In this document: in pieces, positions 5,442-48,032 of the stretch
Layout of the letters: each line of letters starts with the position of its first letter
How positions within the stretch are numbered: position 1 is the first letter of the stretch
Sequence record: MG592671.1
Direction: 5' to 3' (one strand)
Length of the DNA stretch: 64,000 bases
The notes under the pieces: model-generated
Seen by the model: only the letters and a program-made list of their open reading frames with translations
Told to the model about the DNA's origin: nothing
Database searches by the model: none
Translations under genes and position numbers: made by a program

Positions 5442-5996
5442 ATGGTTTATTTGTGTTATATTTCTAAAGGAATGTCGGTAAAAGAAGTTTCGGAAATGCT
5501 TGGATATGATAAGCATAACCCTATAAAGCAAGAAATATACCAGCAACTAATAGATGGTGCTAAGTTTAAAAAGTGGGATACAGAAGCTCGATCAAAAAAA
5601 GGCGCGAAAGGCAGTATGCGTTTTGTAAAACTCATTGATATCAATTCTGATGATGTTGAATCTTGGCTTTTCACTCTAGGACTTGAGGATTCTACATTCT
5701 TCCCTTTAGGAGTTATAGACGTTACTGGTGAAGAACTAGTTAATGAACGTGATGACGAACTAAGCAACATCCATTGGAGTATTCAACCTGAACTGAGTAA
5801 AATGGTTGTTGAGTATTATACAAAGTATCCTAAGACAGAAATTGTGTATCGTGGAGGCTGGAATCGTGATATTGACTACAGTCTTAGAAACAGGTTGTCC
5901 GCACATTACAATACTCGCTATAGAGAAGAAGAAACAAAAATCAAGAAAAAGTATGCCAACACAATCACCCAATATATGAAAAAATTTGACCTATGA
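5442..5996 (+). CDS. hypothetical protein
   Basis: 184-aa ORF coupled to the next gene. Confidence 0.7.
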   Translation: MVYLCYISKGMSVKEVSEMLGYDKHNPIKQEIYQQLIDGAKFKKWDTEARSKKGAKGSMRFVKLIDINSDDVESWLFTLGLEDSTFFPLGVIDVTGEELVNERDDELSNIHWSIQPELSKMVVEYYTKYPKTEIVYRGGWNRDIDYSLRNRLSAHYNTRYREEETKIKKKYANTITQYMKKFDL

Positions 5997-6442
5997 AAAA
6001 ATATCTACATTGGTGCATCAGCACATCCAGCAAAATGTATAAGAAATACGGAACTAAGTATATTCTAATACTCACTGGTTCAATCACTGGCCTAAACGTT
6101 ATTATCGGGGCTTTATTTTTGTATTTGTTTGAGCACAATGTAGACAATGCGCTAATCAACTCATATAGTTCAGCTTTATGGATGAACTGGATGGTAGCTA
6201 CAACTGTAGGTTTTGGGGATTACTATCCTATATCTACAGGAGGTAAAATAGTTACTGGTATCTCAAGTGCAATTGGCATAGGAATGTTTGGGTTATTCAC
6301 TTCTGTAGTATCAGGTATTCTAATGGAACATACTGATGATAGTATTAGAAACAGAGAACTAAAAGAACAAAATGCTAGAATTGAAATTGAACTTAACGAG
6401 GTCAAGAAGATCCTAGTAAGCTTTACCAAAGATAAAAAATAA
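5993..6442 (+). CDS. Two-TM potassium channel (KcsA/Ion_trans_2-like)
   Basis: TM1, pore helix ALWMNWMVA, filter TTVGFGDYYP, TM2 GIGMFGL, C-terminal coiled coil. Confidence 0.9.
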   Translation: MKKYLHWCISTSSKMYKKYGTKYILILTGSITGLNVIIGALFLYLFEHNVDNALINSYSSALWMNWMVATTVGFGDYYPISTGGKIVTGISSAIGIGMFGLFTSVVSGILMEHTDDSIRNRELKEQNARIEIELNEVKKILVSFTKDKK

Positions 6443-6457
6443 GGTTAATGCGTTAAA

Positions 6458-6793
6458 ATGAGCAATTTTGAAAAGTTTTATCCTGCATTATATAACTGGT
6501 GTTCTCGTCACCCCTCACATATGTTAAGTTCTAATTGTGCATTTAAAAATCTAATGACTAAGGATTTAGGCGATTTGCCTGGATTTGCAGATTGTGGGAT
6601 TAGAACTGTGTACGCTAGAGCAGCCCAAGATCCATTTGCAATCAAATATACCTATCATATAGGAGATGTCAACTCACGTAAGAGTATTAACGTGGTGATA
6701 TCTATGGGAATTGAGTTCCATAGACGTGATGGCAGCACAGCCGCAGCGATTGCAAATGATTTAACATACCAAAATCTTAGGAAGTATACTTAA
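6458..6793 (+). CDS. hypothetical protein
   Basis: ORF coupled to rnlA. Confidence 0.7.
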   Translation: MSNFEKFYPALYNWCSRHPSHMLSSNCAFKNLMTKDLGDLPGFADCGIRTVYARAAQDPFAIKYTYHIGDVNSRKSINVVISMGIEFHRRDGSTAAAIANDLTYQNLRKYT

Positions 6794-7959
6794 TGAAATA
6801 TCAAGAATTATCCACTCGTCAAGAGGAAATCTTTTCTAATCTAACAACTATTTGTAAGGATAGTGACGCATTCTACTTCCAAGATTTCCCAGCAAATGAA
6901 GACGAAGACACAGTGTACCGAATCTTCAATTACCGACAAGCATCATATACTGACTTTTGTATGCCAGATGCGCATGAATGTCGAGGAATTACCTTTGAAG
7001 TATCAATGTATGGTAACCCTATACGTTTAGTATCGATGCCAATGCAGAAATTCTACAATCATTCAGAAACCCCGTTTGCAATGGTACATGATATTTTTGA
7101 TACAGATCCACTACTTCATGTGTCTGAGACTGACGTGAAGGCCGACGGATCTCTGATCAGCTCAGCAATCCACGTAGATGGCATGCTAGTGTTGAAATCC
7201 AAAGGGTCATTTGCCTCAGTCCAAGCAACTGAATCCTTAAAATGGCTCGAGCATCGACCTGAGATATACAACGAGGTGATGCAACTAACCCAAAATGGAT
7301 ATACAGTAAATTTTGAATGGTGTTCACCAGATAATCGTATCATTTTACCATACGCTGAGCCCCATCTTAAAGTGTTAAACATTCGTAATAATTTTACTGG
7401 TGAGTACGAGTCTCGACGTGACATCGGGGTACATTCTCCAGTACTTAAATCTCACATGATTGAACTTGTGTCTCTTCCAGGTAATACTTGGGACGAAATG
7501 ATTGAAACAGTTCGAAAAGAAACTGGTATTGAAGGGTACATTGTCAAGTTTGATAATGGGTTATGGGTTAAAATTAAAACTGACACATACAAAACGTTGC
7601 ATCACTCGAAAGACTCTGTTAATATTCCGCGCCGTTTATTTGAAGCGTGTGTGATGGATGCCACTGATGACCTAAAGGATATGTTTGGGACTGACGAAGT
7701 GGCTATGAAGCTAATTACTGATATGGAAGATTTTGTTCGTCCTATTTATAATGGCATCTGTAATGATGTTGAAACTTTTTATAATGATAACAAAGAGCGC
7801 TCACAGAAAGAATACGCTATTGCTGCACAGGCAGTCTTAGGCAAAGAACTGAACAAGTTTGGCCTAGCTATGTCATTGTACAACGGCAAAGAGATTGACT
7901 ACAAAAGCAATTTGAAGAAGTACTGGAAATCTCTTGGTCTTAAAGATGAGAAAATCTAA
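6793..7959 (+). CDS. rnlA: RNA ligase 1 (T4 RnlA-like)
   Basis: ECRGITF, motif I KADGSLI, EGYIV, VKIK. Confidence 0.9.
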   Translation: MKYQELSTRQEEIFSNLTTICKDSDAFYFQDFPANEDEDTVYRIFNYRQASYTDFCMPDAHECRGITFEVSMYGNPIRLVSMPMQKFYNHSETPFAMVHDIFDTDPLLHVSETDVKADGSLISSAIHVDGMLVLKSKGSFASVQATESLKWLEHRPEIYNEVMQLTQNGYTVNFEWCSPDNRIILPYAEPHLKVLNIRNNFTGEYESRRDIGVHSPVLKSHMIELVSLPGNTWDEMIETVRKETGIEGYIVKFDNGLWVKIKTDTYKTLHHSKDSVNIPRRLFEACVMDATDDLKDMFGTDEVAMKLITDMEDFVRPIYNGICNDVETFYNDNKERSQKEYAIAAQAVLGKELNKFGLAMSLYNGKEIDYKSNLKKYWKSLGLKDEKI

Positions 7960-8231
7960 TGCTACAGAACTTTGCCTCTAATATTGAGAAGCCAACGTCG
8001 GCAATGCGAACAGCATATCTCTACGCTTTGAGTATTGGGGCGTTTGATTCTGATAAAGTTTCATATTATGATTTTGAAAGTAGTTCCTTAGATGATAGTC
8101 CCTCGACAGAAATACATAATTCTGTTTTCGAAGCGCTGCATGTTCTTTGGAAAGAAGGTTTTATTATCATAGATAGTGAGGGACCTTTTGAAATGGTACG
8201 CTGGAACAGCGAGGATTATCCTATTGCTTGA
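7959..8231 (+). CDS. hypothetical protein (paralogue of next gene)
   Basis: Shares IGAFD/MGAFD and W-SE/W-SD with 8224-8490. Confidence 0.7.
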   Translation: MLQNFASNIEKPTSAMRTAYLYALSIGAFDSDKVSYYDFESSSLDDSPSTEIHNSVFEALHVLWKEGFIIIDSEGPFEMVRWNSEDYPIA

Positions 8232-8490
8232 AGACTTTGCTAGATCTATCCAACGTTGGACTGATTGCGAAATTGCAGCATACCAACTAGGCATCCATAT
8301 GGGTGCCTTTGATCAAGAAGATGTGCCGTTAAATGACTTTTACGAAGGTGATTTTGATGATGAGTATCTTCATGATCTAAAAATATCACTACTTAGAGCT
8401 CTTAACGCATTAGAGCACGAACGCTATATCGTATATTACATTGGAGAAAGCATGTGGAAATGGCGAAGCGATTTATATCCGTTGGACTAA
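8224..8490 (+). CDS. hypothetical protein (paralogue of previous gene)
   Basis: TTG start chosen by alignment with the upstream paralogue. Confidence 0.6.
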   Translation: MLEDFARSIQRWTDCEIAAYQLGIHMGAFDQEDVPLNDFYEGDFDDEYLHDLKISLLRALNALEHERYIVYYIGESMWKWRSDLYPLD

Positions 8491-8708
8491 TAGCTCTAGC
8501 ATTGGTCGGGTGTGGTAAAACTGAAATAGCTGAAGAAAAGTTTACTAAAGTTGAACTTGAATCAAATGATATGGTATTCACTGAGTTCTCACGATCTATG
8601 TCAGTGCTGCAGATAACTGCAAATGGAATGCCGTGTATAGTTTATAACCACATGTCAAACAAGGCAGGCATCACTTGTGATTGGACGAAATATAACCCCG
8701 GCCCATAG
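8460..8708 (+). CDS. Lipoprotein
   Basis: Signal peptide with lipobox LVGC. Confidence 0.65.
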   Translation: MAKRFISVGLIALALVGCGKTEIAEEKFTKVELESNDMVFTEFSRSMSVLQITANGMPCIVYNHMSNKAGITCDWTKYNPGP

Positions 8709-8964
8709 AGGCGTATACATCTACGAAGAAGTAGATGATAAAACTGTGATTATCGAGCTTAAAAACCAATTTTACCGAGGTGATTTATTTGACTGGCTTA
8801 ACAGTATAGAATGTTTCGCGCAAACCATACGTGATTATGAACAGCCAATAATGCATGAGAAAGAAGATAGAGACAAACTTGGTATTTGGAAAAGGTTTAG
8901 AGTAACCGAACTCATTGAAATTAAGGGATATGACGTAGTTACTTTAGTTATGTTAGGACTGTAG
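8677..8964 (+). CDS. hypothetical protein (C-terminal tag family)
   Basis: Ends YDVVTLVMLGL; start uncertain. Confidence 0.6.
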   Translation: MIGRNITPAHRGVYIYEEVDDKTVIIELKNQFYRGDLFDWLNSIECFAQTIRDYEQPIMHEKEDRDKLGIWKRFRVTELIEIKGYDVVTLVMLGL

Positions 8965-9013
8965 CAGAGACCTAAAAAATACACAATAGCAACATATTTT
9001 ATTGGCGGATATC

Positions 9014-9406
9014 ATGAAGAAAAAAGCTTCTGTTTGTTTGATACAAAATAGCGAAGGCGCAGTGCTACTATTGAAGCGGTCGCCTAATGATCGATCATAT
9101 CCTAACACTTGGTGCTTACCTGGAGGTAAGCTTGACGAAGGGGAAGACTTTGAAGACGCGTGTATCAGAGAAACACACGAGGAAACTGGACTAATAGTCA
9201 ACCCATGGGAGCGGAGTATTTCATATGAAATACCAGGTTTCGAAGTACGAATTTTTGATGCATTAGAGGTTGACGGTGAAATAATTAACTTCCCTACTAA
9301 CGAACACTCAGAGTATAAGTGGGTTCCTAAATCGGAACTTTCTCAGTACGAGGTTCCTCAAATGACTACCACATACCTTAAATGGAGATTAGGTCCTTAT
9401 GACTAA
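9014..9406 (+). CDS. Nudix hydrolase (MutT-like)
   Basis: Nudix box GGKLDEGEDFEDACIRETHEETG. Confidence 0.9.
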   Translation: MKKKASVCLIQNSEGAVLLLKRSPNDRSYPNTWCLPGGKLDEGEDFEDACIRETHEETGLIVNPWERSISYEIPGFEVRIFDALEVDGEIINFPTNEHSEYKWVPKSELSQYEVPQMTTTYLKWRLGPYD

Positions 9407-9959
9407 AAACAAAGAACGTTTTGAATTATTGAAAGAACGCAACATCATCCTTACTGGCAACGTTGCAGAAGCAAACTGTGCAGAACTGGTGCAAAAAATC
9501 ATTGACATCAATCTTAAAGACGATGTAATGGAAGAAATGGAAGTCGGATACGTTCGCGAACCAATCAAACTAACAATTGATTCGTACGGTGGTTGCTGTT
9601 ATAGTGGTAATGGTCTTATTGGTACAATCCTTACATCAAAGACTCCAGTGTGGACTTACTGTCATTCTAAAGCCATGAGTATGGGACAATTGACTTTCAT
9701 CGCAGGAGAGCGACGTTTTATTGGACCACAAGCAACTATTATGTTTCATGGTGTTGCAACAGGTGCCACTGGATACCTCCCAGCAGTTGAAACTAAATTG
9801 GAAGAAGGTCGTCGTTTAGAAGAAAAAGGTACAAAACTAACAGTGGCTCGCACTAAGGTATCTCGTGATAAACTAGAGGGTGTTATCAAAGAGAAGACGG
9901 AATGGTTTTTTGATGCCGAACAAGCAATTGAGTACGGCTTTGCTACGGATCTCCTATAA
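9399..9959 (+). CDS. clpP: ClpP-like protease
   Basis: IDSYGG, AMSMG catalytic Ser, IMFH. Confidence 0.85.
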   Translation: MTKNKERFELLKERNIILTGNVAEANCAELVQKIIDINLKDDVMEEMEVGYVREPIKLTIDSYGGCCYSGNGLIGTILTSKTPVWTYCHSKAMSMGQLTFIAGERRFIGPQATIMFHGVATGATGYLPAVETKLEEGRRLEEKGTKLTVARTKVSRDKLEGVIKEKTEWFFDAEQAIEYGFATDLL

Positions 9960-10228
9960 TGTCAGAATTTACTATCCAGGAAACCCAAAAAGCAGTAGTT
10001 CGTTCGATGACGCCAGAACTAAAAACTCGGCCCAGCTCGATGATGGAAGGATACACTATCTTTGAGTTTAGAGCAGGATCTCATTGGACAGTCTCGCGTG
10101 TCCATGCAATCATTGAAGAATTTGAAATTGAGTTTCTTGAATTAGAGTGTAAACTAAACGTGTTTAGCTTCCAAACAAAACAAGGTGATGAGTTACTAGC
10201 CCACTTTACATTATTAGGATTGTTATGA
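9959..10228 (+). CDS. hypothetical protein (C-terminal tag family)
   Basis: Ends DELLAHFTLLGLL. Confidence 0.7.
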   Translation: MSEFTIQETQKAVVRSMTPELKTRPSSMMEGYTIFEFRAGSHWTVSRVHAIIEEFEIEFLELECKLNVFSFQTKQGDELLAHFTLLGLL

Positions 10229-12594: not shown

Positions 12595-12781
12595 ATGCTA
12601 AAGAAAAATAAATGCTTGTAAATTGTGCGGCGGTACAATTTACAAGCATCAAACATATTGTACTATGGAATGTTTTAAAACATTTATTAACCTGCCTGAT
12701 GAAAATGGCGAATCTCAAGCTAAAATAAAAATAAAAAGAATAGGAAAAGCTACGAGAGAATATCTGTCAAAAACGGATTAA
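12595..12781 (+). pseudogene. Frameshifted remnant of a Zn-finger (HNH-type) endonuclease
   Basis: CKLCG...YCTMEC is out of frame with ATG12595. Confidence 0.45.
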
Positions 12782-16085: not shown

Positions 16086-16361
16086 ATGGCAAAAGCTAGA
16101 CCTAATGTGGATGTCTGTCTTGAGCATATATGCACTTACAATAATGAATATCAAACGTGTGGTCGACCTAAATTATCTGATATTTTGTCAGGAAGTCCAA
16201 CAACAACGTCGATGATTACAGAAGATAAGATGGCTATTGTTGCTATGTATCGTTATTTTGGATGTAAAATTTATGGAACTCTGAAGCAAAAGATTAAGAT
16301 CCATTATAATGCTCATGAAGAACTTGATCAAGTAACACTTACACTTGGAGGCTCACTATAA
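16086..16361 (+). CDS. hypothetical protein (C-terminal tag family)
   Basis: Ends EELDQVTLTLGGSL. Confidence 0.7.
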   Translation: MAKARPNVDVCLEHICTYNNEYQTCGRPKLSDILSGSPTTTSMITEDKMAIVAMYRYFGCKIYGTLKQKIKIHYNAHEELDQVTLTLGGSL

Positions 16362-16678
16362 TGGACTTAGAAGAATTTGTTAAATTCGTTCAAATAGCTA
16401 AAGACTTCAATAATGAATATATTGAAGTAAAAGATTCATATAGACGCCAATGCTCTATAAAAGATCTTACTCACAAAATTGATAACTGGACTGCTTCTAG
16501 TATGTTCAAGATTTTAGCCCAGGAAAAGCTAGATAGACTTCTTAAGTATCAGTCTTGTCTAGAATATTTCAAATGCCATACACCAGAAGCGTGTATCCGT
16601 AATGCTGATTATATAATTGCTGATATGTCTGACGAAGACCTTGTTACCCTATCCCTATTAGGAATATTCAATGAGTGA
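16361..16678 (+). CDS. hypothetical protein (C-terminal tag family)
   Basis: Ends DEDLVTLSLLGIFNE. Confidence 0.7.
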   Translation: MDLEEFVKFVQIAKDFNNEYIEVKDSYRRQCSIKDLTHKIDNWTASSMFKILAQEKLDRLLKYQSCLEYFKCHTPEACIRNADYIIADMSDEDLVTLSLLGIFNE

Positions 16679-16865
16679 TTTCTTTCGTTGGGCATACGCC
16701 GTTCTAGCAGTTATTACATATGTTCCTTACGGTTTAATGTGGTACTGCGCTCCAAAAGTTTTTAAACTGCAAAACTTAGATCCATTAGAAGAGTTAGGAT
16801 TTATGATCAGCGCGATCGCAATCACTATTCATAGACTGCTAATAATCACGTATTTTATTATATAA
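16671..16865 (+). CDS. Small membrane protein
   Basis: Two hydrophobic segments. Confidence 0.6.
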   Translation: MSDFFRWAYAVLAVITYVPYGLMWYCAPKVFKLQNLDPLEELGFMISAIAITIHRLLIITYFII

Positions 16866-16871
16866 GGAAAC

Positions 16872-16914
16872 TCTCCAATAGTAATGTTATAATAAAGTAA
16901 TATTCTATTGGAGA
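16872..16914 (+). promoter_or_regulatory. Promoter inside a 10-bp SD-occluding hairpin
   Basis: TCTCCAATAG / CTATTGGAGA flank TGTTATAAT at 16885. Confidence 0.75.
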
Positions 16915-16919
16915 AAATT

Positions 16920-17885
16920 ATGGAAAAGCGACAATTTGTGCATGATTTATCTGAGGATGCGTTTGCGGAGTATCTATCTAGTTTTAAGCATCCTTACTCA
17001 AGAGGCATACAAGGACAGCTAAATTTTGAGAAGCACGTGAATAAATTAGGATGGAGTTTTCCTGAGGATTATTTTTATGATGCAGGGTATAAGAAATTAT
17101 CGTTAATATGCCCTAAAAATCACGTGAGAGAAATGAAACCACAAGACTTTATAAAAACTAAAGATTGCTCACTCTGCTCAGGTATGCAAAAAGAAGGAGC
17201 AGAAGAAAATATAATCAAACTTTTTGAATCAGAAGGTTATAAAAAAGATACCTCGTTCGAATATATTAATAATCACACTAAACTTGATTTAGTATGTCCT
17301 GTAGGACACAGTACGAGAATACTACCACATAGATTTAGGACAGGCACACGCTGTGATATCTGTACAGGGTTCAATAGAGATCTAACAAGACAAAAATTTT
17401 ATGATATATTAGATAATATCGGGTACATAATTGAAGGAGAGTTTGAATATAATAATGGTAAATCTAGAGTTAAGTTGATATGCAATGAAGGGCATAAATT
17501 TGAATCTTGTCCTGAAGATATTAAAAGAGATGTTAGGTGTTCTGTATGCTATATGCCTAAAGGTGAGCGCGAAGTATTAGCATATCTTGAAAAGAACAAT
17601 ATCGAATATAGAACTCAGCAAACTTTTGACGATTGTGTATATCGCAGTAAATTACGCTTTGATTTTAGTATTATTATTAATGGGGAAATGAGGCTTATTG
17701 AATATAACGGAGAGCAACATTATCACTGTAGAGGTTTATTTGATAATGAAGAAGCATTTAAAATCCAACAAATAAAAGATAATATAAAACGTGACTATTG
17801 TAAGAAACATAATATCCCACTTCTTGAAATAAAATACACAGAATTTAGAAACATTAACTTAATCTTAGAAGGTTTTATAAAATGA
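16920..17885 (+). mobile_element. Free-standing homing endonuclease (Zn-ribbon repeats plus PD-(D/E)XK/DUF559-like domain)
   Basis: CP-GH...C-xC repeats; LRFDF, IEYNGEQHY. Confidence 0.75.
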
Positions 17886-18424
17886 GATTTTATGCATTCT
17901 GTAATATGTACATGTCAGGCATCCACGCTGGCATCCAAACAAGTCACTCTTTACATGAGATGTTTGTAAAGTACCAACACGCAGGTTCGCCAAAAACAAA
18001 AGCAGCTCAAGATACTTTGTTTGATTGGGCACGCAACCACAAAACTACTATCGTATTAAACGGTGGTATGCAAGAGAACTTGGAAGATCTGTTTTACTTT
18101 CTAGGCATGGATGCAAACCCTTACCCATTTGCCAAGTTCCACGAAGCTGACTTTAGTCTAAATGGCGCGCTAACAAACGTAGGTATCGTTCTACCAGAAG
18201 CAATATACAAAACAGCGGCAGAGCTACGTCAATTTAAATCTCATGGAAACACACATCGTATCAAAGAACACGATGATGGATCGCTGCACGTATTTCGAGA
18301 CTCGAAAAGAAACATTTTATTAGTTACTGATGACGTGACTGGGGAGAATGCGCATCACGAAGTGTACAGTCCTTGGCAGCATGAGTTGATGCGACGTATG
18401 AATCGTTGCAATCTGATGAGTTAA
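17882..18424 (+). CDS. Possible peptidyl-tRNA hydrolase 2-like protein
   Basis: GIQTSHS, HKTTIVLNGG, F-E...LT-VG pattern recalls the PTH2 fold; tentative. Confidence 0.45.
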   Translation: MRFYAFCNMYMSGIHAGIQTSHSLHEMFVKYQHAGSPKTKAAQDTLFDWARNHKTTIVLNGGMQENLEDLFYFLGMDANPYPFAKFHEADFSLNGALTNVGIVLPEAIYKTAAELRQFKSHGNTHRIKEHDDGSLHVFRDSKRNILLVTDDVTGENAHHEVYSPWQHELMRRMNRCNLMS

Positions 18425-18434
18425 CGGGAGATAT

Positions 18435-18818
18435 ATGAAGGTAACATATAACGACAGGTATACGTTTGATCACCCATTTGACGAAACAACTGAGTTTGAA
18501 CTTAATATACTAGGGACGTTCGAAATAGTTATAGATTTTGACGGAGCCATGTTCTCTAACTCACTATCATGGGAATGCACTGGCGACGACCAGCAATCAT
18601 CGCGTGATGATGAAGAAAGAAGAGACACTGAATCGCGCAATTTTTTATGTACGCACTATATTGATGATTTGGCACTAATGTACCAGATAGTTGATGAATA
18701 TTTGTTCCACGACCTAGAAGGAAAGGAAGCATTACGTTATTTGGAAAATATTCCAAATGATGCTAAGGTTGTTATATTGAATAACTTGTCAGAAAAAGGA
18801 CCAACAAATGAACGATAA
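18435..18818 (+). CDS. hypothetical protein
   Basis: SD GGGAG. Confidence 0.7.
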   Translation: MKVTYNDRYTFDHPFDETTEFELNILGTFEIVIDFDGAMFSNSLSWECTGDDQQSSRDDEERRDTESRNFLCTHYIDDLALMYQIVDEYLFHDLEGKEALRYLENIPNDAKVVILNNLSEKGPTNER

Positions 18819-19254
18819 AGAACGAATAGATTTGCTAAATTCTGCATTCATGTCCGAGTGGCTTGATAGCTATTGCTTTGGTGTAGAAGGTGAAGAAGAT
18901 CAGTTTGAGCTCGTTGTTATTGAAGGTTTAAATCAACGCTTTGTTGCTGTGGTGAACTCTGGCACTTTTATTGATCGTCTTTGGGTAGACTCGGATGGTA
19001 CGGTATGGGCAGCAGGAGGTCAAGATGATCCGTTTTTGCCACAACCAGACTGGGATGTTGATAAGGTGAATGGTAAATGGTACTGTGGTGATGAAATTGA
19101 GCAGGTAGGCGAAAATTTCCAATTCAACTACGGGTGTCATTGGTACTCATCTATGTGTATTCCTAAAGTTAAGTCTTACAGCATCACACCAGAAAGTTAT
19201 GCATACTTGACTACTAAATGGTTTTTAGAGTATCCGGATAAACGAGATGAATGA
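18808..19254 (+). CDS. hypothetical protein
   Basis: SD AAGGA, coupled. Confidence 0.7.
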   Translation: MNDKERIDLLNSAFMSEWLDSYCFGVEGEEDQFELVVIEGLNQRFVAVVNSGTFIDRLWVDSDGTVWAAGGQDDPFLPQPDWDVDKVNGKWYCGDEIEQVGENFQFNYGCHWYSSMCIPKVKSYSITPESYAYLTTKWFLEYPDKRDE

Positions 19255-19544
19255 TGATTGTAACAGTTGACGACCACATACATGCTGACTTCTGTTGTAA
19301 AATGTCTGACTTAGATATCAACTTGGAATACCTAGGGAAGTTTAGGAAAAGTAGGTCATGGTCTAATGAGCTAGGATATTCTGTTCCTAAGCACAGAAGT
19401 GAAACTTATGATGTATACATAACTGCTTATTTTGATGAAAATTATGTGGAATACAGATACAGGACTACTAGCTCGGTAGATGTTGCAACTATTATAATGG
19501 ACAATACATATTCATTTTTATTTGATTGTGGGATTTTAGTATAA
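19251..19544 (+). CDS. hypothetical protein
   Basis: ATGA coupling. Confidence 0.65.
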   Translation: MMIVTVDDHIHADFCCKMSDLDINLEYLGKFRKSRSWSNELGYSVPKHRSETYDVYITAYFDENYVEYRYRTTSSVDVATIIMDNTYSFLFDCGILV

Positions 19545-19554
19545 TAAAAAGGAA

Positions 19555-19596
19555 CTCTACTATAATGTTATACTGTGTTATGGCAAAATAGTAGAG
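19555..19596 (+). promoter_or_regulatory. Promoter variant inside a 9-bp inverted repeat
   Basis: CTCTACTAT / ATAGTAGAG flank TGTTATACT. Confidence 0.55.
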
Positions 19597-19658
19597 ATTT
19601 TGTCTGTACAAAACGTTGATTCGTTAAAATATCAACACTCCCACTCTAAGGGAAGAAC

Positions 19659-20310
19659 ATGAAAATAAAACAGGTAAACGATATGAGTAATAAAGGAGTT
19701 GATCCGACACGAAGGGGTCCTATGGATTTCTTTATGTCGGATCCGTGAATAATGTCCACATTTTTGGCACAAGAATGTAATTACATATTGCAATCGTCCT
19801 TTTTCAGATGTGGATAGTATGAACACTGCATTATCTCACCAATGGAATCAAACAGTTGGGGAAAATGATACTGTTTATATTCTCGGTGATTGGTGTTTTT
19901 ACGGCCCTAATAATGTGCAAAAAGTTGCAGACCATATGAACTCTCTTAATGGAATGAAGAAGTTTGTATTTGGTAACCATGACCACAAAGGCATGATTCG
20001 TAAGCTAGTCAAGGATGGACTAGTCCCTAAATTGGAGATTTTAGGCGATCGAGCAGAGATAAAAAGCTTCGATTCTAAGGGCAACAAATACGATATTACC
20101 CTTTGTCATTACGCACACAGAACTTGGAATAAGAGTCATTATGGCTCGATGATGTTGTATGGCCACTCGCACGGAACTCTTCCAGGATTAGGGAGATCTA
20201 TGGATGTTGGTGTTGATGTAAAGCATAGACTTTACGGTGATTGGGCTCCTTTTAGTATAGACCAAATTATCGATCAAATTGGCAATATTCCAATACATAA
20301 TCCAGTGTAA
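19659..20310 (+). CDS. Calcineurin-like metallophosphoesterase split by a 13-nt coding gap
   Basis: 5' frame ends ...FFMSDP-stop (19748); the +1 frame resumes (P)HFWHKN... then ILGD, GNHD, CHY, YGHSH. Confidence 0.7.
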
Positions 20311-20448
20311 ATCTATAGAACACAATTTTAGAAATTACAATGGCACTACTAAATTTATTATACTGGGTGATATTACTAATATCACCCTTTCTTGTATCAG
20401 GGATGTTAATCATGCTTTGTTTGATCTGAGCATGATATAGGAGGAAAG

Positions 20449-21591
20449 ATGGCAACAGGTAATTACATACCAGAAAAATTTTATGTTGGTAGGCAATCGC
20501 GTGGACAAAATTCAATTGTAGGATTCATGACACCTATAACGAAAGACTCAGCGTTTAGCGGGCGTAAGGCAACAGTTAACAAGTGGTCTGACGATAATCT
20601 ACCTAAACTTGAAATCGAAAACAAATCTCAGAAAGGGTTCCGTGTCGTAGATAATGTTTCTCGACATAGTACATCAAATGTATTATGGAGAGTACTACAC
20701 CCACGTGGCTTTGAGATTGAAATTTCAAGTGGAAACTTCATGCACCTAATTCAAGAATGTAAAATTGATGAAGGTGAATTTGAAAACTCATTATTGTTTG
20801 TACGTTGCGGAAAAGAAAACTACTTAACATTTGAGGGATCGTCAGTTCACGCAGAAGCTCATGCAGTTGCAGATATTGATAATAAAGTACCAATAAAAAA
20901 CGTTCAAATTGGTGATTCTATTTTACTCAAAGATGGCACTGACGCTATCTATTACGGGAGCGCTCATTTTGTAACGGTTAGTCCGTATCGAACTAATGAA
21001 CTTGGCAACTCTGCAAGACGTCACGTATATAAAGTGACTCGTTCTGATGGTAGCATTTCTTATGTAGCTCGTAGTTCCCTTCATATCTCTAAGGTACAGA
21101 ACAAAGTTCAAACTCCTATTGATAAGCAAGTTGCGTTTGATCACTTGGAAGATATTTTCAAGAATCCTGTAAAGAATGTATCGTTTGATATGTACGATTA
21201 CAATGACATTGTTGGTATATTCCAAAAGCCACTCAAAGAATTGGATATGGTATACAAAACTCGTACTATCACCAAAGCAGAATATAAGTCTGCTATTGCT
21301 CGTAGAAGTGGTGAATGGCGTTATGTTATGATGGTAGGATCAGATCGCTATAGAAAGTATAGTGGTCGTCGTTATCACTATAGCCAATCAAAGCGCCCAG
21401 TTAGCACAGCAACGTCTATTGAGTGCGTAAAGATTCTTGGTGACGGCAACACAACTCCTTGGCGTATCGAAGAAGAGACAGTAACCAATTCTGGTACTTG
21501 GCACACTCATACATACAATGAAGAAGTTGAGTATCAAATTGAGCCTACTGATGTAACATCGTATGAAGTTATTGAAATAGAGCGCAAGTAA
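20449..21591 (+). CDS. hypothetical protein
   Basis: 380-aa ORF; SD AGGAGG. Confidence 0.8.
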   Translation: MATGNYIPEKFYVGRQSRGQNSIVGFMTPITKDSAFSGRKATVNKWSDDNLPKLEIENKSQKGFRVVDNVSRHSTSNVLWRVLHPRGFEIEISSGNFMHLIQECKIDEGEFENSLLFVRCGKENYLTFEGSSVHAEAHAVADIDNKVPIKNVQIGDSILLKDGTDAIYYGSAHFVTVSPYRTNELGNSARRHVYKVTRSDGSISYVARSSLHISKVQNKVQTPIDKQVAFDHLEDIFKNPVKNVSFDMYDYNDIVGIFQKPLKELDMVYKTRTITKAEYKSAIARRSGEWRYVMMVGSDRYRKYSGRRYHYSQSKRPVSTATSIECVKILGDGNTTPWRIEEETVTNSGTWHTHTYNEEVEYQIEPTDVTSYEVIEIERK

Positions 21592-21625
21592 CACCGTCGC
21601 TTATAATGTTACAATATTATAAGCG
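21588..21625 (+). promoter_or_regulatory. Promoter variant inside a 10-bp inverted repeat
   Basis: CGCTTATAAT / ATTATAAGCG around TGTTACAAT; GTAACA upstream. Confidence 0.55.
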
Positions 21626-21651
21626 CATTAATTAATCTCAAGGAGGAGCTA

Positions 21652-22464
21652 ATGAATTTACAAGAATATTGCAAAAAGAACAAACTCTTTATGCCAGGCG
21701 ACCAAATACGTGCTAAAACATTTGGAGATATTCGTGCAAATTTAAGTGTAGCTGGTTATGAGCTTGACATAGAGTATGATTATACTGGTAACAGAGTTGA
21801 ATCTTGTCTAGCAACTCATAGTAAATTTAAAGATATTAATATCACAATAAACGATAGTCGAAAATTACGCGATTGGTCAACCATTTCAAACACAACTGGT
21901 GAACTTAGTGAAATGCGTTTTTTTACACGAATTGGTAGCTATAAACGAACAATTCGACTCCCTATTTCATGCTATGATATACAGTTTCACGAAAAGTACA
22001 CGCCAGAACAGCGCTTAAAAAAATATAACATCTGTGTTACGGAGTTAACGCAAGAATTACAAAACACAACTAAACCTCAAGAAAAAACACAGCAAAAGGA
22101 ATCTGCTATGAATTTGAATTTTAATGCCCAAGATATCTTAGACCAAAATAAAGAAGCTGCCATGACTGCCGCAAAGATTGAAGTTGGAGAAGCTGCGGTC
22201 GCGCAACTTGTAAAGTTAGTAAAACCTAAACTGCCAATGATGGCTCGCGGATATGCAGATCTTCCAATGTTTGATATTTTAGTTGCAAACCTTGTAGTTA
22301 TGGCTATTCGACAGTACGCTCCACAAAATGAAAAGGCCTTGGTAGTTGCAGATGCAATGCTGTTGTCTGCAATGCAAAAACAAATGAAAGAATTTAATAT
22401 CCCTGGTATGATCGACGAGTTTGTATCTAAAGTTGATGTATCAGCAATTACGAAAGGTGACTAA
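21652..22464 (+). CDS. hypothetical protein with likely internal start at 22108
   Basis: SD AAGGAGG; second SD AAGGA before in-frame ATG22108. Confidence 0.75.
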   Translation: MNLQEYCKKNKLFMPGDQIRAKTFGDIRANLSVAGYELDIEYDYTGNRVESCLATHSKFKDINITINDSRKLRDWSTISNTTGELSEMRFFTRIGSYKRTIRLPISCYDIQFHEKYTPEQRLKKYNICVTELTQELQNTTKPQEKTQQKESAMNLNFNAQDILDQNKEAAMTAAKIEVGEAAVAQLVKLVKPKLPMMARGYADLPMFDILVANLVVMAIRQYAPQNEKALVVADAMLLSAMQKQMKEFNIPGMIDEFVSKVDVSAITKGD

Positions 22465-22575: not shown

Positions 22576-23370
22576 ATGAAATTTAGAATTTTAAGTGATC
22601 TACATACGGAATTTAGTAGGTACGAAGTTCCCACACGGCAAGGTGATTTAGAAACAGTATTGATACTTGCTGGAGATATTGGCATGTTTAAAAGAAAATC
22701 AGCATATGCTGATTTTCTAGAGGATTGTTCTGTTAAATTTAAGCATGTGGTAGTTGTTCCTGGAAATCACGAATATTATAAAACTAATATTGGTCGTGGA
22801 TCCTTTCATGTTCGGGAATTAATTGAAGGCATTACAAATATCAGTATCTTAGAAAAAGAAACTGTTATTGTAGATGATGTTGCTATTATTGGTGCTACCC
22901 TATGGACTGATTTTGGTAGAGACGAATTAGTCCGTTTTAAAGCCCAAGAAGTAATGAACGACTACAGACAAATCCGTTATGGTCCAGAAGCTGTTCCTTG
23001 GCAGAAGAAATTACATACTAATGACACTTTAGCTATGCACTTCGAGCACAAGAAGTTTATCTTTAGTGAGGTCCAGAAGCATAAAAACGATGGTTTAAAA
23101 ACTGTCGTTATCTCTCATCACGGGCCATCCACAAAATCAATTGATACTGATTATATTGGTGACGAGCTGAACTACGCATATATCTCAGATCAGTCTGAAG
23201 ATATATTTGATTATGCTCCTAACTTATGGATTCATGGACATGTTCATCAAAATTTCGATTACGAAATAGGTGATACAAGAGTAGTTTGTAATCCGCGCGG
23301 ATACCCTAATCGCATCGGTGGTGGTTTTGAGAATCCTAATTTTGATGACTTCTTTAGTGTGGAAATCTAA
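22576..23370 (+). CDS. Metallophosphoesterase
   Basis: SDLH, AGD, PGNHE, SHH, HGHVH. Confidence 0.9.
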   Translation: MKFRILSDLHTEFSRYEVPTRQGDLETVLILAGDIGMFKRKSAYADFLEDCSVKFKHVVVVPGNHEYYKTNIGRGSFHVRELIEGITNISILEKETVIVDDVAIIGATLWTDFGRDELVRFKAQEVMNDYRQIRYGPEAVPWQKKLHTNDTLAMHFEHKKFIFSEVQKHKNDGLKTVVISHHGPSTKSIDTDYIGDELNYAYISDQSEDIFDYAPNLWIHGHVHQNFDYEIGDTRVVCNPRGYPNRIGGGFENPNFDDFFSVEI

Positions 23371-29620: not shown

Positions 29621-29878
29621 ATGAAACCAATTACTCTTTTGATTATTACTTTCTTGCTGGCAACGTTGCCAGCAAGAAGTATAGCCCAAGACTTGCAATC
29701 ACACAAAAATGATGTTAGTGATAGGGTCGAGACTATCGAAGAAAAAATAGCTAAGTTGGAAAAAACACATATAGAACTTAAAGAAACTATATCTAGACTA
29801 GAAAAAAAAGTTGATGATACTAATCGTAGATTGACTATTTTAACTGGCACTTATTACGGAGCATCAGGGGGAAACTAA
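29621..29878 (+). CDS. Exported coiled-coil protein
   Basis: Signal peptide then heptad repeats. Confidence 0.55.
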   Translation: MKPITLLIITFLLATLPARSIAQDLQSHKNDVSDRVETIEEKIAKLEKTHIELKETISRLEKKVDDTNRRLTILTGTYYGASGGN

Positions 29879-37067: not shown

Positions 37068-38555
37068 ATGAAAAATGAAAATCCTATTGTTCGTTCTGTA
37101 AATCCAACTGTTGAGTACAATACAATACTTGACATCGATTCGTATAAAGAGTTGCACGGAGCTATGCTTCCTGGAGGTGTTGTTAATCTCTCAGCAAGTA
37201 TTATCCCTCGTAAACCTAATGCTCACGCAACGCATGTAGTTGCAATGGGTCATCAGTATTATATTCGCCGCTATCTGCAAAGAGCCATCACTCAGGAGAT
37301 GATTGATGAGGCTGCAATTGAGATTGATGAGCAAGGTTACGAGTTTAACCGCGCGCGTTGGAATTATATTTTAAATCGCTACAAAGGTAAACTTCCTCTG
37401 GAGGTACGAGCAGTCCCTGAAGGGACAGTGCTTCCAGTTGGAGTTCCATCAGTAGTTATCGAGACTACTGATAAAAAGTGTGCGTGGCTTGTTGGTCGTA
37501 TTGAAACAGCAATACAACGCAACGAGTGGAAGTTCAGTACAGTGGCGAGTATTTCTCGTGCTGTTAAAACTTATCTTCAAGATGTTATGGAAGATATGGA
37601 AGGTTACCGAGACGTGCCATTCCACCTCCACAACTTTGGAGATCGTGGGGCTGACGCGTACGAAGCTGCAATAATAGCTGGCATGGCACATCTTACGCAA
37701 TTTAGCGGTACAGATTGTCTATCAGCGAACAAGCACATCAAATGGCTATATAATACTAATAAGCCGTACGGCTCATCTGTTATCGCAACAGAGCATAGCG
37801 TAATGTGTGCCTGGTCTGACCCAGAAGCACGTGATGACTATAAAGCTGCGGTGATGGCTGTTGATCTGCTAGAAAAGGCGGTAGAACGTTTCGAGAATAC
37901 TGGAAAAGGCGTGCCTATAGTGTCTGTTGTTATCGACACATACGATGCATATCGATTCACTCGTGATTACATTGGTGGGTATCTAAAAGATCGCATTGTA
38001 GCGCTTGGTGCTCGCGGCGGGCGTTTGGTATGTCGTCCTGATTCAGGCGATGCAACTACTATGCCAATTGAGATCATTGAAATCTTAATGGATAAGTTTG
38101 GTTACGAAACTAATGAGAAAGGTTTCCGCAATCTTCCTAGCTACATTGGAGTAATCCAAGGTGATGGTATCAACCAAACTAGCTTACGCACAATTGTTGA
38201 TAATCTGTATAAGAGCAAAATGTCTCTACAAAATCTTGTATTTGGAATGGGTTCAGGCCTAGTCCATGATGCAGGGCGTGATGAGTTCAGTTTTGCTATG
38301 AAGGCAACTGCTCGTCAAATGGAAGATGGGACTTGGGTTGACATGTTTAAAGATCCGATTACTGACCATAAAAAGAAATCGCTGAAAGGCCGTTGTACTA
38401 CTTTCAAATGTAATGCAACAGGTAAGATCTTTGCTGATCGTATTGGCAGTCAAAGCGATAACAGCAGCGTGGTTGATATGATGGAAATTGTATACCGTGA
38501 TGGTAACATCCTGGTTGAATATGATTTTGACCAAGTTCGCGAAGCTTCAAAATAA
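37068..38555 (+). CDS. nadV: Nicotinamide phosphoribosyltransferase
   Basis: DIDSYK, LHNFGDRG, ATEHS, RPDSG, QGDG, KSLKGR. Confidence 0.93.
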   Translation: MKNENPIVRSVNPTVEYNTILDIDSYKELHGAMLPGGVVNLSASIIPRKPNAHATHVVAMGHQYYIRRYLQRAITQEMIDEAAIEIDEQGYEFNRARWNYILNRYKGKLPLEVRAVPEGTVLPVGVPSVVIETTDKKCAWLVGRIETAIQRNEWKFSTVASISRAVKTYLQDVMEDMEGYRDVPFHLHNFGDRGADAYEAAIIAGMAHLTQFSGTDCLSANKHIKWLYNTNKPYGSSVIATEHSVMCAWSDPEARDDYKAAVMAVDLLEKAVERFENTGKGVPIVSVVIDTYDAYRFTRDYIGGYLKDRIVALGARGGRLVCRPDSGDATTMPIEIIEILMDKFGYETNEKGFRNLPSYIGVIQGDGINQTSLRTIVDNLYKSKMSLQNLVFGMGSGLVHDAGRDEFSFAMKATARQMEDGTWVDMFKDPITDHKKKSLKGRCTTFKCNATGKIFADRIGSQSDNSSVVDMMEIVYRDGNILVEYDFDQVREASK

Positions 38556-45450: not shown

Positions 45451-45542
45451 GGCGGGTTGGTAGAGTTTGGCTTATTGCACCTGACTTGAAATCAGGCGAA
45501 CCTTAAACGGTTCCGAGGGTTCGAATCCCTCACCCGCTTCCA
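45451..45542 (+). tRNA. tRNA-Ser(UGA)
   Basis: Class II cloverleaf, loop CTTGAAA, CCA; discriminator U. Confidence 0.9.
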
Positions 45543-45544
45543 AT

Positions 45545-45620
45545 GCAGGGATAGCTCAGTAGGTAGAGCACGTGATTGAAAATCACGGTCGCGCCAGTTC
45601 AATTCTGGCTCCTTGCACCA
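45545..45620 (+). tRNA. tRNA-Phe(GAA)
   Basis: 76 nt, loop TTGAAAA, CCA. Confidence 0.92.
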
Positions 45621-45723
45621 ACAGTGCGTACTCCTCTAATACACCTCGGTAATATTACGTTTACGCCTTCTTAATTTGTTAGTCTGTGATGGAAAAGAAA
45701 AATAATCTCAAGGAGATAAAACA

Positions 45724-45930
45724 ATGGCTAAATCCTATGTACAGATCAAGTACCTTACAGTAAGCGAACTTGATAAACTAAATGACAAGCGTTTAGTGGA
45801 AGTGCTAAAAGTTGCTCGTAAACACTTCAAGATTCTTGAAGCTGGTGAATTTACTGTTGACGAAGTTGCGTCAGCTGAAACATACCACAACCAAGTCAAA
45901 GCTATTAGCGAGACTCGTAGTAACGTATAG
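45724..45930 (+). CDS. hypothetical protein
   Basis: SD AAGGAG. Confidence 0.7.
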   Translation: MAKSYVQIKYLTVSELDKLNDKRLVEVLKVARKHFKILEAGEFTVDEVASAETYHNQVKAISETRSNV

Positions 45931-45942
45931 TAATCTACGTAC

Positions 45943-46031
45943 AGGGAATGTTCTTGTCAGCGGTCTCCAAAACCGTCGAGAATAAACAGACTTGTGGTGC
46001 TCTAGGGGTTCGATTCCTCCATTCCCTGCCA
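45943..46031 (+). tRNA. Atypical tRNA-Trp(CCA) lacking a normal D-arm
   Basis: Acceptor AGGGAAT/ATTCCCT-G-CCA, loop CTCCAAA, T-loop TTCGATT; only ~10 nt where the D-arm should be. Confidence 0.65.
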
Positions 46032-46047
46032 AATTTTATAAGATATT

Positions 46048-46269
46048 ATGAAAAGTTATAAAAGTAATTGCTTATTTGAAGCAATAAAACTACGATTTAA
46101 AATACCTAACAGTTCATTTAAAATGAAGTGGACAGAACAAAGTTGGATATTCCCTCATTGTTATGTTGAGACCGAAACGCATAAGATTGCTTTTGTTGGA
46201 TTATATTCCGATGAACCACCTTTAGCCCATTTTTGGTACATAGGTAGAATAAAAAGTAGATTGAAATAA
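46048..46269 (+). CDS. hypothetical protein
   Basis: ORF between tRNAs. Confidence 0.6.
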   Translation: MKSYKSNCLFEAIKLRFKIPNSSFKMKWTEQSWIFPHCYVETETHKIAFVGLYSDEPPLAHFWYIGRIKSRLK

Positions 46270-46272
46270 TTC

Positions 46273-46362
46273 GGAGGCATGGCAGAGCGGCTTATCGCGC
46301 ACCCCTGCTAAGGGTGTAGACCTTAATAGGTCTCGTTGGTTCAAATCCAACTGCCTCCGCCA
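46273..46362 (+). tRNA. tRNA-Ser(GCU)
   Basis: Class II, loop CTGCTAA, G73-CCA. Confidence 0.93.
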
Positions 46363-46364
46363 AT

Positions 46365-46453
46365 AGAGAGATGACTGAGTGGCTTAAGGTACTCGCTTGG
46401 AAAGCGAGAGGAGGCATAGCTTCCCGCAGGTTCGAATCCTGTTCTCTCTGCCA
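46365..46453 (+). tRNA. tRNA-Ser(GGA)
   Basis: Class II, loop TTGGAAA, G73-CCA. Confidence 0.93.
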
Positions 46454-46478
46454 ATATATTTTTAAACAAGGACTTAAT

Positions 46479-46724
46479 ATGTTCGTAGTAATTTTTGGTC
46501 AACCAGGTTGCCCATTCTGCACAAAAGCAGTAGATCTAGCTGAAAAATATAAAACAGAGCGCGATGATTTCAACTATCGTTATGTTGATATCAAAGCAGA
46601 AGGCATTAGCAAAGCTGATCTTTCAAAAACAGTAGGTGAAGAAGTGACCACAGTGCCACAAATCTTCATTGATCAAACACCAATTGGTGGTTACACGCAA
46701 TTTGAAGCATACAATTTAGACTAG
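46479..46724 (+). CDS. grxA: Glutaredoxin 1
   Basis: GQPGCPFC, TVPQIF, IGGY; start corrected to ATG46479. Confidence 0.93.
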   Translation: MFVVIFGQPGCPFCTKAVDLAEKYKTERDDFNYRYVDIKAEGISKADLSKTVGEEVTTVPQIFIDQTPIGGYTQFEAYNLD

Positions 46725-46738
46725 GAGTAAAACAGCAA

Positions 46739-47194
46739 GTGGAACACGTCATTACGTTCCTTCAGGATTACCTGTCCTGGATCATGAACGGTGTATCGAT
46801 GGTGGCAGCATATTGTCTTTCTAATCAGAGAGCAGTCGTTGGTCGATACTTAGGTGCAACAGGTGCATCTCTTTTTATATTATACGGCGTGGTGACAAAT
46901 CAGCCTGCTTTTGTGGTAGCTGATATCATCTTCCTGTACATTTACATTAGTGCAGTTTTGAAGTTCAATAAGAAACGAGATTCTTATCGTGAAAAAGCAG
47001 CGGATGATGAAGAAACTATTGCTCAAATGCGAAAGATCATCAAACGTGCTAATACAATTGAATTAGAAATTCTTGAAACACGTATTGGTAAGCAAACGAA
47101 AAAGAAACTTGAACTCCGTAAATCATTACAGAAGCAACTTTATATTCTGTTGAAGATTGGCGAAAAGATTGAAAATGACATCGAGGACGAGTAA
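46739..47194 (+). CDS. Membrane protein with a C-terminal coiled coil
   Basis: Three short TM segments; SD AGGAG. Confidence 0.65.
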   Translation: MEHVITFLQDYLSWIMNGVSMVAAYCLSNQRAVVGRYLGATGASLFILYGVVTNQPAFVVADIIFLYIYISAVLKFNKKRDSYREKAADDEETIAQMRKIIKRANTIELEILETRIGKQTKKKLELRKSLQKQLYILLKIGEKIENDIEDE

Positions 47195-47208
47195 AATCGT
47201 CCTTTTTT
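47184..47208 (+). terminator. Terminator
   Basis: AGGACGA-GTAAAA-TCGTCCTTTTTT. Confidence 0.75.
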
Positions 47209-47223
47209 GTGACTAAAATTTAT

Positions 47224-47342
47224 GGGCTCATGGCGAAGCGGGATCGCGATTTAGTTTAGTACCTAGATCTAGGAGTACGCATCCGCAACACTCTTAACCG
47301 GCATGATCGGTGACGTTGGTTCGAATCCAACTGAGTCCACTA
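47224..47342 (+). ncRNA. tRNA-like RNA with G3.U70/A73 and a replaced anticodon arm
   Basis: GGGCTCA/TGAGTCC-A-CTA, D-arm and T-arm present. Confidence 0.65.
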
Positions 47343-47349
47343 TTAACTT

Positions 47350-47568
47350 GTCGAGCTGGAAAACAAAGCCTCTGAAACTGTAAAGCCTCCACAAGGTTAA
47401 CAGATTGTAGAAGATTCGTTATACTAAGAGAATCAGGGGAGATAATGTTTGGTCAGAGTAACAAATAGATATGGAATATTAGAGGAAAAGCTAGTAGACA
47501 GTGGAACTACTTGCAGAACTCTTTTAAGACGTTGAAACTACGGGGTTCGATTCCTCGTCTCGGCACAA
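47350..47568 (+). ncRNA. 219-nt RNA with tRNA-like termini
   Basis: GTCGAG/CTCGGC-A-CAA; T-arm CGGGG-TTCGATT-CCTCG. Confidence 0.55.
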
Positions 47569-47572
47569 AAAA

Positions 47573-47664: not shown

Positions 47665-47674
47665 TATTAACTAT

Positions 47675-47969: not shown

Positions 47970-48032
47970 ATTCAGGATAACGCAAACGCATTATCCTCAT
48001 TAATATGTGTTAATATAATACAACAACATTAT

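Follow-up and report, generated by a model that had tools for sequence, protein, structure and literature searches.

The 64-kilobase (kb) window analyzed here, positions 124001-188000 of sequence record MG592671.1, belongs to Vibrio phage 2.275.O._10N.286.54.E11 (2.275.O in the following), a 349-kb jumbo phage whose isolation host is Vibrio cyclitrophicus, and contains a calcineurin-like phosphoesterase gene that is split between two reading frames by a short gap. GenBank lists the pieces as two genes: NVP2275O_252, of 29 amino acids (aa), annotated as a 'calcineurin-like phosphoesterase superfamily domain protein', and NVP2275O_253, a 163-aa 'metallo-dependent phosphatase-like protein' called from ATG19819 (positions are those of the window). 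The two pieces, which we refer to as ORF1 and ORF2 (ORF, open reading frame; Table 1), were treated separately throughout, and no fused read-through sequence was used as a query. Frame 0 runs from ATG19659 through ...MDFFMSD-P, ending with a CCG proline codon and a TGA stop; the +1 frame reads TAA-TGT-CCA-CAT..., is translated as PHFWHKNVITYCNRPF... and stays open until TAA 20308-10. The sequence of the gap is UGAAUAAUGU. A preliminary description of this DNA, made from its letters alone, had presented the gap as a candidate for programmed ribosome bypassing; its frames, stops and coordinates were re-read, and every statement it made about the sequence is correct.

Table 1. Features of the split phosphoesterase gene and associated elements in the window (nt, nucleotides; bp, base pairs; SD, Shine-Dalgarno sequence)
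Feature	Position	Strand	Description
ORF1	19659-19748	+	29 codons and UGA
Alternative in-frame start ATG	19722	+	SD AAGGGG at 19712-17; SD and AUG both within the 5' hairpin
5' hairpin	19701-19743	+	stems of 9 bp and 10 bp (19 bp) with a 1x1 mismatch between them; loop UAU
Proposed take-off codon CCG (Pro)	19743-19745	+	read from the sequence
Undecoded gap	19746-19755	+	UGA stop (19746-48) and AUAAUGU; contains the +1-frame TAA 19750-52 and zero CCN triplets
Proposed landing codon CCA (Pro)	19756-19758	+	13 nt from take-off; first CCN triplet in any frame
ORF2	19759-20310	+	183 codons and TAA; resume codon CAU is the His of D-x-H
Downstream long-range hairpin	19745-19824	+	19745-63 pairs with 19806-24; encloses gap and landing codon
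Terminator-like hairpin and T-run	20365-20397	+	closes the transcription unit
tRNA-Pro, anticodon UGG	61023-61099	+	phage-encoded

The gap interrupts the first metal-binding motif of the enzyme (motif I, D-x-H), with the Asp encoded in frame 0 and the His in frame +1. ORF2 holds the remaining metallophosphoesterase motifs (GD, GNHD, H and GHSH, the family's GHxH), is complete and shows no second lesion, and all motifs are present in a single polypeptide only if the gap is skipped. The PHROG 547 'phosphoesterase' profile matches the ORF2 piece with E = 5e-40 from profile position 37 (an intact relative is matched from position 30), and each of the 1,437 tblastn matches of the piece in phages starts at residue 2, the His of D-x-H. 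From these match starts it follows that the residues absent from ORF2 are exactly those of frame 0, in agreement with the earlier claim that motif I is cut in two. The match of the downstream piece to Pfam PF12850 scores 19.4 bits, below the cutoff of 27; 2,481 homologues were retrieved at E <= 1e-10, and the nearest solved structure is 1XM7. ORF1 consists of the enzyme's first eight residues, MDFFMSDP, preceded by a 21-codon N-terminal extension that intact homologues do not have, their motif I Asp being at median position 8. A skip from CCG to CAU produces a junction in which every residue is collinear with the nearest intact protein, which is encoded on the Logan contig L007.

The 5' hairpin has a predicted free energy (dG) of -25.7 kcal/mol (z = -4.7; 0 of 200 shuffled sequences fold as well) and is the most stable of all 51-nt folds on the + strand of the 64 kb. 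Because of its four G-U pairs, the mRNA strand folds more stably than the complement (-19.8). Its 5' arm is within the N-terminal extension, its 3' arm comprises the codons for DFFMSD, and the last pair, G19701-C19743, uses base 1 of the take-off codon, so that the hairpin of about 20 bp reported earlier to end at this codon is confirmed at 19 bp. Since the SD and AUG of the 'homologous' start at 19722 are buried in the hairpin, initiation at AUG19659 is more plausible. The downstream long-range hairpin is weakly supported (z -2.6) and its role is uncertain; such a downstream structure (a 'barrier' hairpin) is not conserved across the gapped genes described below. The next most stable local folds in the window, at 37393-37443 (-25.3 kcal/mol), 12601-12651 (-23.8) and 29632-29682 (-21.8), are probably terminators.

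CCG is rare in the phage, accounting for 19 of 253 Pro codons in long ORFs (CCA 123, CCT 107, CCC 4). The isoacceptor type tRNA-Pro(UGG) can read both CCG and CCA, and the take-off and landing codons at 19743 and 19756 are thus readable by one tRNA type. The phage gene for this tRNA is part of a cluster of 11 tRNA genes at 45451-61399 (three Ser, Phe, Met, Tyr, Gln, Asn, Pro-UGG, Thr and Glu).

The preliminary description had named an assembly error among its alternatives. We consider a sequencing or assembly artefact to have a vanishingly small chance of being the explanation, even if the gap comes from one isolate genome: a second assembly under another run accession (Logan assembly SRR8667477) matches at 100% identity across 5,075 bp, with the gap, which makes an assembler artefact unlikely, a non-repetitive 13-nt insertion is an untypical error, and analogous gaps occur in 11 unrelated assemblies. 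Several decoding and origin scenarios were also rejected. A simple +1 slip is excluded because the +1-frame stop TAA 19750-52 lies downstream of the frame-0 stop; for the same reason a programmed +1 frameshift of the prfB type fails, the new frame not being open across the shift site. The sequence permits a chain of termination and reinitiation between 19752 and 19821, in which UGA-AUA-AUG19752 opens a 21-codon frame-0 ORF that is followed by UAG19815-U-AUG19819. Such a chain could supply ribosomes to the annotated start of the 163-aa protein, but it would yield only that product, without motif I, and was discarded as an explanation; the UAGUAUG also occurs in the intact relative, since it encodes a conserved D-S-M. 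A quasi-palindrome origin, with the downstream arm at 19808-20 as template for the insert, is unconvincing, as just 5 of the 7 inserted bases fit. No copy of the insert or similar sequence was found elsewhere in the 64-kb window, a Sigma-70 promoter scan gave no significant site upstream of the gene, an Rfam search returned no family match, and a codon-score scan of the window for other start-less genes revealed no further clear split gene.

Taking the comparisons presented below together with the local architecture, we consider it probable that the gap is hopped by a fraction of ribosomes, so that one full-length metallophosphoesterase would be made from two frames by hairpin-assisted programmed hopping. 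In the proposed mechanism, translation would start upstream of the hairpin, probably at AUG19659, and melt it. The ribosome would then hold peptidyl-tRNA-Pro on CCG in the P site with UGA in the A site, a state in which termination is expected to be slow, judging from the literature on Asp and Pro before stop codons. A C-terminal Pro slows termination. An Asp before the take-off residue has likewise been reported to impair release-factor action (10.1101/2022.08.31.505936). At this point the 3' arm of the hairpin would be in the mRNA exit channel and the free 5' arm just behind the ribosome, and re-zipping of the two would pull the mRNA forward. The ribosome footprint extends about 12-15 nt upstream of the P site, and an advance of 13 nt would therefore be about enough to free the whole 3' arm. 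The 5' stem-loop of T4 gene 60 has been proposed as a forward driver of this kind (bioRxiv 10.1101/2024.12.09.627546). The tRNA would leave CCG and re-pair 13 nt downstream with CCA, the first cognate triplet, and decoding would resume at CAU, which would restore ...SD-P-HFWH..., the first metal-binding motif, with GPMDFFMSDPHFWHK as the predicted tryptic junction peptide. The efficiency of the hop may be low.

Genes with the same kind of break were sought by screening for homologues whose predicted proteins lack the N-terminal motif, followed by DNA-pattern searches and alignment-seeded scans of IMG/VR. Eleven further gapped genes of the same enzyme family were found, all metagenomic and in unrelated assemblies, which brings the number of loci to twelve with that of the window. 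At L028, L030, L031 (= L032), L037, L058, L205 and L287 the take-off codon is the His codon CAU, followed by UAG, UAA or UGA, the hop would span 5, 7 or 8 nt, and the triplet before the resume codon is UAC, AAC, UAU or AAU. At L203, L204 and L208 take-off would be from the x codon, ACU (Thr), which is followed by UAG, with a 5-nt hop and a landing triplet GCU. At L236 it would be from the x codon AUC, also followed by UAG, with an 11-nt hop to a perfectly matched AUC. The take-off position of the last four loci is the same as in the window.

The twelve genes share a set of features in spite of the divergence of their ORF2 proteins, which are 34-76% identical to one another. In every case the break is inside D-x-H and a skip to the resume codon restores the motif with zero residues gained or lost; a stop codon directly follows the take-off codon; the gap length (13 nt in the window and 5-11 nt in the eleven others, with values of 5, 7, 8 and 11) is never a multiple of 3; the landing triplet matches the take-off codon at at least two positions; and ORF2 is complete, with 158-203 codons. 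The close relatives L030 and L031 have gaps of 8 nt and 7 nt, respectively, and both keep UAC before the resume codon. Because the gap varies and UAC is kept, this change fits hopping and not a fixed +1 or -1 shift site. The idea advanced for the window from its sequence, namely a hop from a Pro codon beside a stop to a synonymous Pro codon with the aid of a 5' stem-loop, is thus supported by eleven further genes. Among the IMG/VR homologues examined, about 2% are gapped (2 contigs in 133 loci). A pattern scan of GTDB genomes produced chance matches only, among the 120 matches listed, and a blastn search with a type B cassette against GenBank phages yielded nothing useful.

Three candidates were removed from the class. 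The genes for P0074 (L027) and P0173 (L207) are intact and their starts had been mis-called, and that for P0161 (L206) carries a 1-nt frameshift in a T-run, which is not of this class. In the latter homologue, at L206:230-300 (Logan ERR12074541), the reading frame is broken by one extra T in the run just after D-T-H, and a partial GGGUGUCA/UGACAC hairpin overlaps the ribosome-binding site; this may reflect an error in sequencing, mark a +1 frameshift site or represent a decayed relative of the cassettes.

RNA structure was compared by folding the 60 nt that end at base 1 of the take-off codon in the gapped genes and the equivalent segment in 81 intact homologues. A strong 5' hairpin, with dG of about -18 to -25 kcal/mol, is present in 11 of the 12 gapped genes, that of L204 being weak, and in 10 of the 12 its terminal pair involves base 1 of the take-off codon (the L287 hairpin ends one nt short). 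The intact homologues have a mean dG of -7.8 (standard deviation 4.4; Mann-Whitney p = 6e-8 versus the gapped genes), and the two of the 81 that reach -18 do not have the terminal base paired. Compensatory changes are seen between GGGUGUCA/UGACACCC (x = Thr) and GGAGGUCA/UGACCUCC (x = Leu), which differ by two double changes, and in the L028 stem, where A-U is replaced by G-C; among the window, L203 and L208, both partners differ in each of the two pairs adjoining the take-off codon.

The pair L030 and L031 also bears on selection. Identity is about 75% over the whole length of their shared block, which comprises a remnant of an HNH endonuclease gene, ORF1, the gap and ORF2; the flanks are unrelated. 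The ORF2 comparison gives a proportion of nonsynonymous differences (pN) of 0.14 and of synonymous differences (pS) of 0.79, the latter being saturated, and hence a pN/pS of about 0.18. If the common ancestor of the two had the gap, which is the parsimonious assumption because position, codons and hairpin are identical, ORF2 would have been maintained in a functional state although the gap was present. Within the family, the bypass reading draws support from recurrence, covariation and selection.

Homing-endonuclease genes or their remnants accompany several of these loci. At L028 an HNH gene ends 11 nt upstream of ORF1; at L037 a LAGLIDADG gene overlaps the AUG of ORF1; at L287 an HNH gene is found one gene upstream; and at L236 an upstream ORF has a weak NUMOD3 motif. 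The HNH remnants that precede ORF1 at L030 and L031 (Pfam PF01844, above cutoff; L030:1302-1418 and L031:1247-1405) are truncated, their N-terminal catalytic halves being gone. They differ from each other mainly at synonymous positions, so either they diverged while functional or they are still translated somehow. The 213-kb IMG/VR contig of L037 encodes, at 5618-10225, a 1,535-aa primase/helicase-like ORF that appears to carry two intein-like, LAGLIDADG-bearing inserts, and this genome appears rich in homing elements. For the window, we propose that the gap is probably a scar or an immunity device from a homing-endonuclease cassette, whose endonuclease would have been lost or never have been next to the gene.

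These associations invite the explanation that all members of the class are dead or dying genes bearing immunity scars of selfish homing-endonuclease elements, with the hairpin and stop serving the element at the DNA or RNA level, for example by blocking cleavage or expression, and not decoding. HNH or LAGLIDADG genes or remnants are upstream at 5 of the 12 loci, with the weak NUMOD3 motif at a sixth, and the type B hairpin arms and take-off region are far more conserved in DNA sequence than ORF2, which fits horizontal spread of a small cassette. Dead genes would not be expected to keep ORF2 complete in all twelve cases, nor to show the low pN/pS given above between two gapped loci, at saturated synonymous sites. 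At L030 and L031 it is the endonuclease genes that have decayed, and ORF1, the gap and ORF2 are intact. G-U pairs and compensatory changes suggest a structure formed by RNA of the sense strand, and the occurrence of a stop immediately behind the take-off codon in three independent gap types speaks for a translational signal. We therefore regard this explanation as quite improbable.

The two pieces would also be united if cleavage and re-ligation beside the hairpin took the gap out of the mRNA, with no skip by the ribosome. The gapped gene of L204 is directly followed by a gene for a T4 Rnl2-type RNA ligase (L204:613-1650) and preceded by a tRNA-like remnant (L204:1-60), neighbours which hint at a role of this phosphoesterase family in RNA end-healing or repair; structure is moreover present on both sides of the gap. 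Excision of 5-13 nt from a bacterial or phage mRNA is without known precedent, however, the Rfam search offers no match, and such a process gives no reason for the in-frame stop at the first gap position in all twelve genes or for the near-cognate landing triplets. In our estimation it is extremely improbable, and RNA-level removal and artefact together have only a very slight chance.

The nearest relatives of the window gene bear on whether its own gap is bypassed. No close relatives were found in GenBank phages, IMG/VR or JGI metagenomes. The sole moderately close homologue, P0002 on L007, has 75% aa identity and downstream synteny, and its gene is intact, without gap, extension or hairpin. 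The preliminary description had suggested looking for conservation of the gap in relatives, and had stated that their lacking the 13 nt would refute its proposal; formally, that is what the nearest one shows. Taken by itself, the intact L007 gene would favour a lineage-specific insertion in the window. It does not discriminate, because such cassettes are gained and lost, as in the case of T4 gene 60.

Other observations, too, weigh against bypassing, in the window or in the class. The Pro/Pro, 13-nt gap type of the window is a singleton in every collection searched, and the bypass reading is unproven for it. No homing-endonuclease domain was found beside the window gene (ORFs 16086 to 22461). 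Nascent peptides at take-off would have only 9-29 residues, and because they are so short, peptidyl-tRNA may drop off frequently and efficiency may be low. The spread of a selfish cassette would be possible even if it killed a dispensable gene, and the intact ORF2s could partly reflect recent invasion. Hairpins can be mutational hot spots, and an accidental insertion could have arisen in this way at the hairpin foot. Finally, the selection argument from L030 and L031 assumes that the gap is ancestral.

Several of these points are shared by the explanation that the window gene is a null allele, already listed as an alternative in the preliminary description, in which an accidental or mobile-element insertion of 13 nt inactivated a dispensable phosphoesterase, with at most a trace of spontaneous stop-hopping and no selected function. 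The intact closest relative and the unique gap type are as expected for such an allele; no close relative with the gap attests selection in the window lineage, and the enzyme is absent from most phages and hence non-essential in many. The general tendency of hairpins to mutate fits as well. What a null allele leaves unexplained is that the strongest mRNA-strand hairpin of 64 kb is formed from a novel 21-codon extension and ends on base 1 of the last decoded codon, and that the architecture is repeated in eleven other gapped genes with covariation and complete ORF2s; the immediate stop and the matched Pro before the resume codon would have to be coincidences. We keep the null allele as a rival, though an unlikely one.

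Two neighbouring genes deserve mention. A second metallophosphoesterase, annotated as 3',5'-cyclic AMP phosphodiesterase (Pfam Metallophos), is encoded 2.3 kb downstream, at 22576-23370, and the phage thus has another enzyme of the superfamily. A 321-aa ORF with a CapR homology domain and a treble-clef zinc finger (DUF4379), conceivably a mobile-element gene of the nuclease type, is found 2.7 kb upstream, at 16920-17882.

To our knowledge, efficient natural bypassing in bacteria and phages is represented by essentially one studied system, T4 gene 60 with its homologues, and by the partly tested Hau3 terminase; our literature search found no paper on bypassing in phosphoesterase genes. The parallel with gene 60 that had been drawn for the window holds for the stop after the take-off codon, the landing triplet readable by the same tRNA and the 5' stem-loop as proposed driver of forward movement, but not for a stem-loop in the A site, a long nascent-peptide signal or a mini-SD. 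In both systems a stop-containing, frame-breaking insert is located within the catalytic metal-binding motif of a phage enzyme, an Asp immediately precedes the take-off residue, the cassette includes an N-terminal extension and is associated with homing endonucleases, frequently decayed or lost, and close relatives are without the insert. In T4 gene 60/MobA, the insert serves to protect the site of the element itself, whose endonuclease has often decayed or been replaced or lost (10.1101/2022.08.31.505936). The differences are nevertheless considerable. The gap has 50 nt in gene 60 and 5-13 nt in the phosphoesterase genes, which are without a take-off/A-site stem-loop, the window gap being too short for one. 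The phosphoesterase take-off codon adjoins the 5' hairpin on its 3' side, that of gene 60 the gap hairpin on its 5' side, and the 5' hairpin abuts the take-off site (0 nt) in the former, compared with a distance of 9 nt upstream in the latter. The nascent chain (29 residues in the window, 9 in L037) leaves no room for a KKYK-type tunnel signal, and ORF1 shows no resemblance to the nascent-peptide signal of gene 60 (10.1101/2024.12.09.627546), which is placed about 14-30 residues from the P site. No G-rich triplet or mini-SD, expected about 6 nt 5' of the landing codon, is present in the window gap, a GAGG being found only in the gap of L236. The host genes, a phosphoesterase and a topoisomerase, have no sequence homology, and the endonuclease that is missing beside the window gene has HNH or LAGLIDADG counterparts at related gapped loci.

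The nearest functional analogue is the 10-nt hop of the Hau3 terminase. In this Streptomyces phage gene, inserts of 10 nt (7 nt in a prophage) are bypassed at UUA, the hop having been demonstrated by mass spectrometry in a heterologous system (PMC10732093). As in the phosphoesterase genes, short blocks that disrupt the frame, and whose removal brings back a highly conserved junction, occur in few members of a large phage family, and there is local mRNA structure around the site with a 5' stem-loop as proposed stimulator (PMC10732093). The slow A-site codon of Hau3 is a rare sense codon, UUA, with a regulatory rationale, whereas in the phosphoesterase genes it is always a stop; no link to homing endonucleases has been reported for Hau3, and gene, host and geometry of the structure differ. 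The byp elements of Magnusiomyces capitatus mitochondria resemble the phosphoesterase gaps in being mobile short inserts tolerated through ribosome jumps, with an imperfect landing match and an undecodable A-site codon (cited in PMC5009743). They differ in their length of 27-55 nt, in their use of mitochondrial ribosomes, in occurring by the dozens per genome with no 5' hairpin rule, and in a hopping process that depends on organism-specific features of translation, unlike that of the phosphoesterase genes (PMC5009743). Synthetic 'stop-hops' and +5/+6 hops in Escherichia coli (Weiss et al. 1987, as cited in PMC5009743 and PMC10732093) are similar in that re-pairing of peptidyl-tRNA takes place a few nt downstream across a stop between matched or near-matched flanking codons. 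These were unprogrammed, of low efficiency, artificial and without a dedicated stimulator, in contrast to natural genes that combine such a site with a conserved strong hairpin.

On balance, we lean slightly towards the view that the phosphoesterase cassettes are a second natural bypass family, independent of T4 gene 60, that was planted in D-x-H by homing-endonuclease elements and would use an A-site stop and an abutting 5' hairpin that pulls the mRNA forward, with no nascent-peptide signal or A-site stem-loop; 2.275.O would be its cultured member. As the window phage is a cultured isolate with a known host, the prediction is testable at the bench. The family supplies natural variants, with hops of 5, 7, 8, 11 and 13 nt, His, Thr, Ile and Pro at take-off, and perfect as well as two-thirds landing matches. 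If the bypass reading is true, these genes would allow a direct test of whether refolding of the mRNA behind the ribosome alone drives forward sliding, since the hairpin abuts the take-off codon. It would also mean that short split phage genes are not always pseudogenes, a caution for annotators, and that placing an untranslated plug in an essential motif is a recurrent form of self-site protection by homing-endonuclease cassettes.

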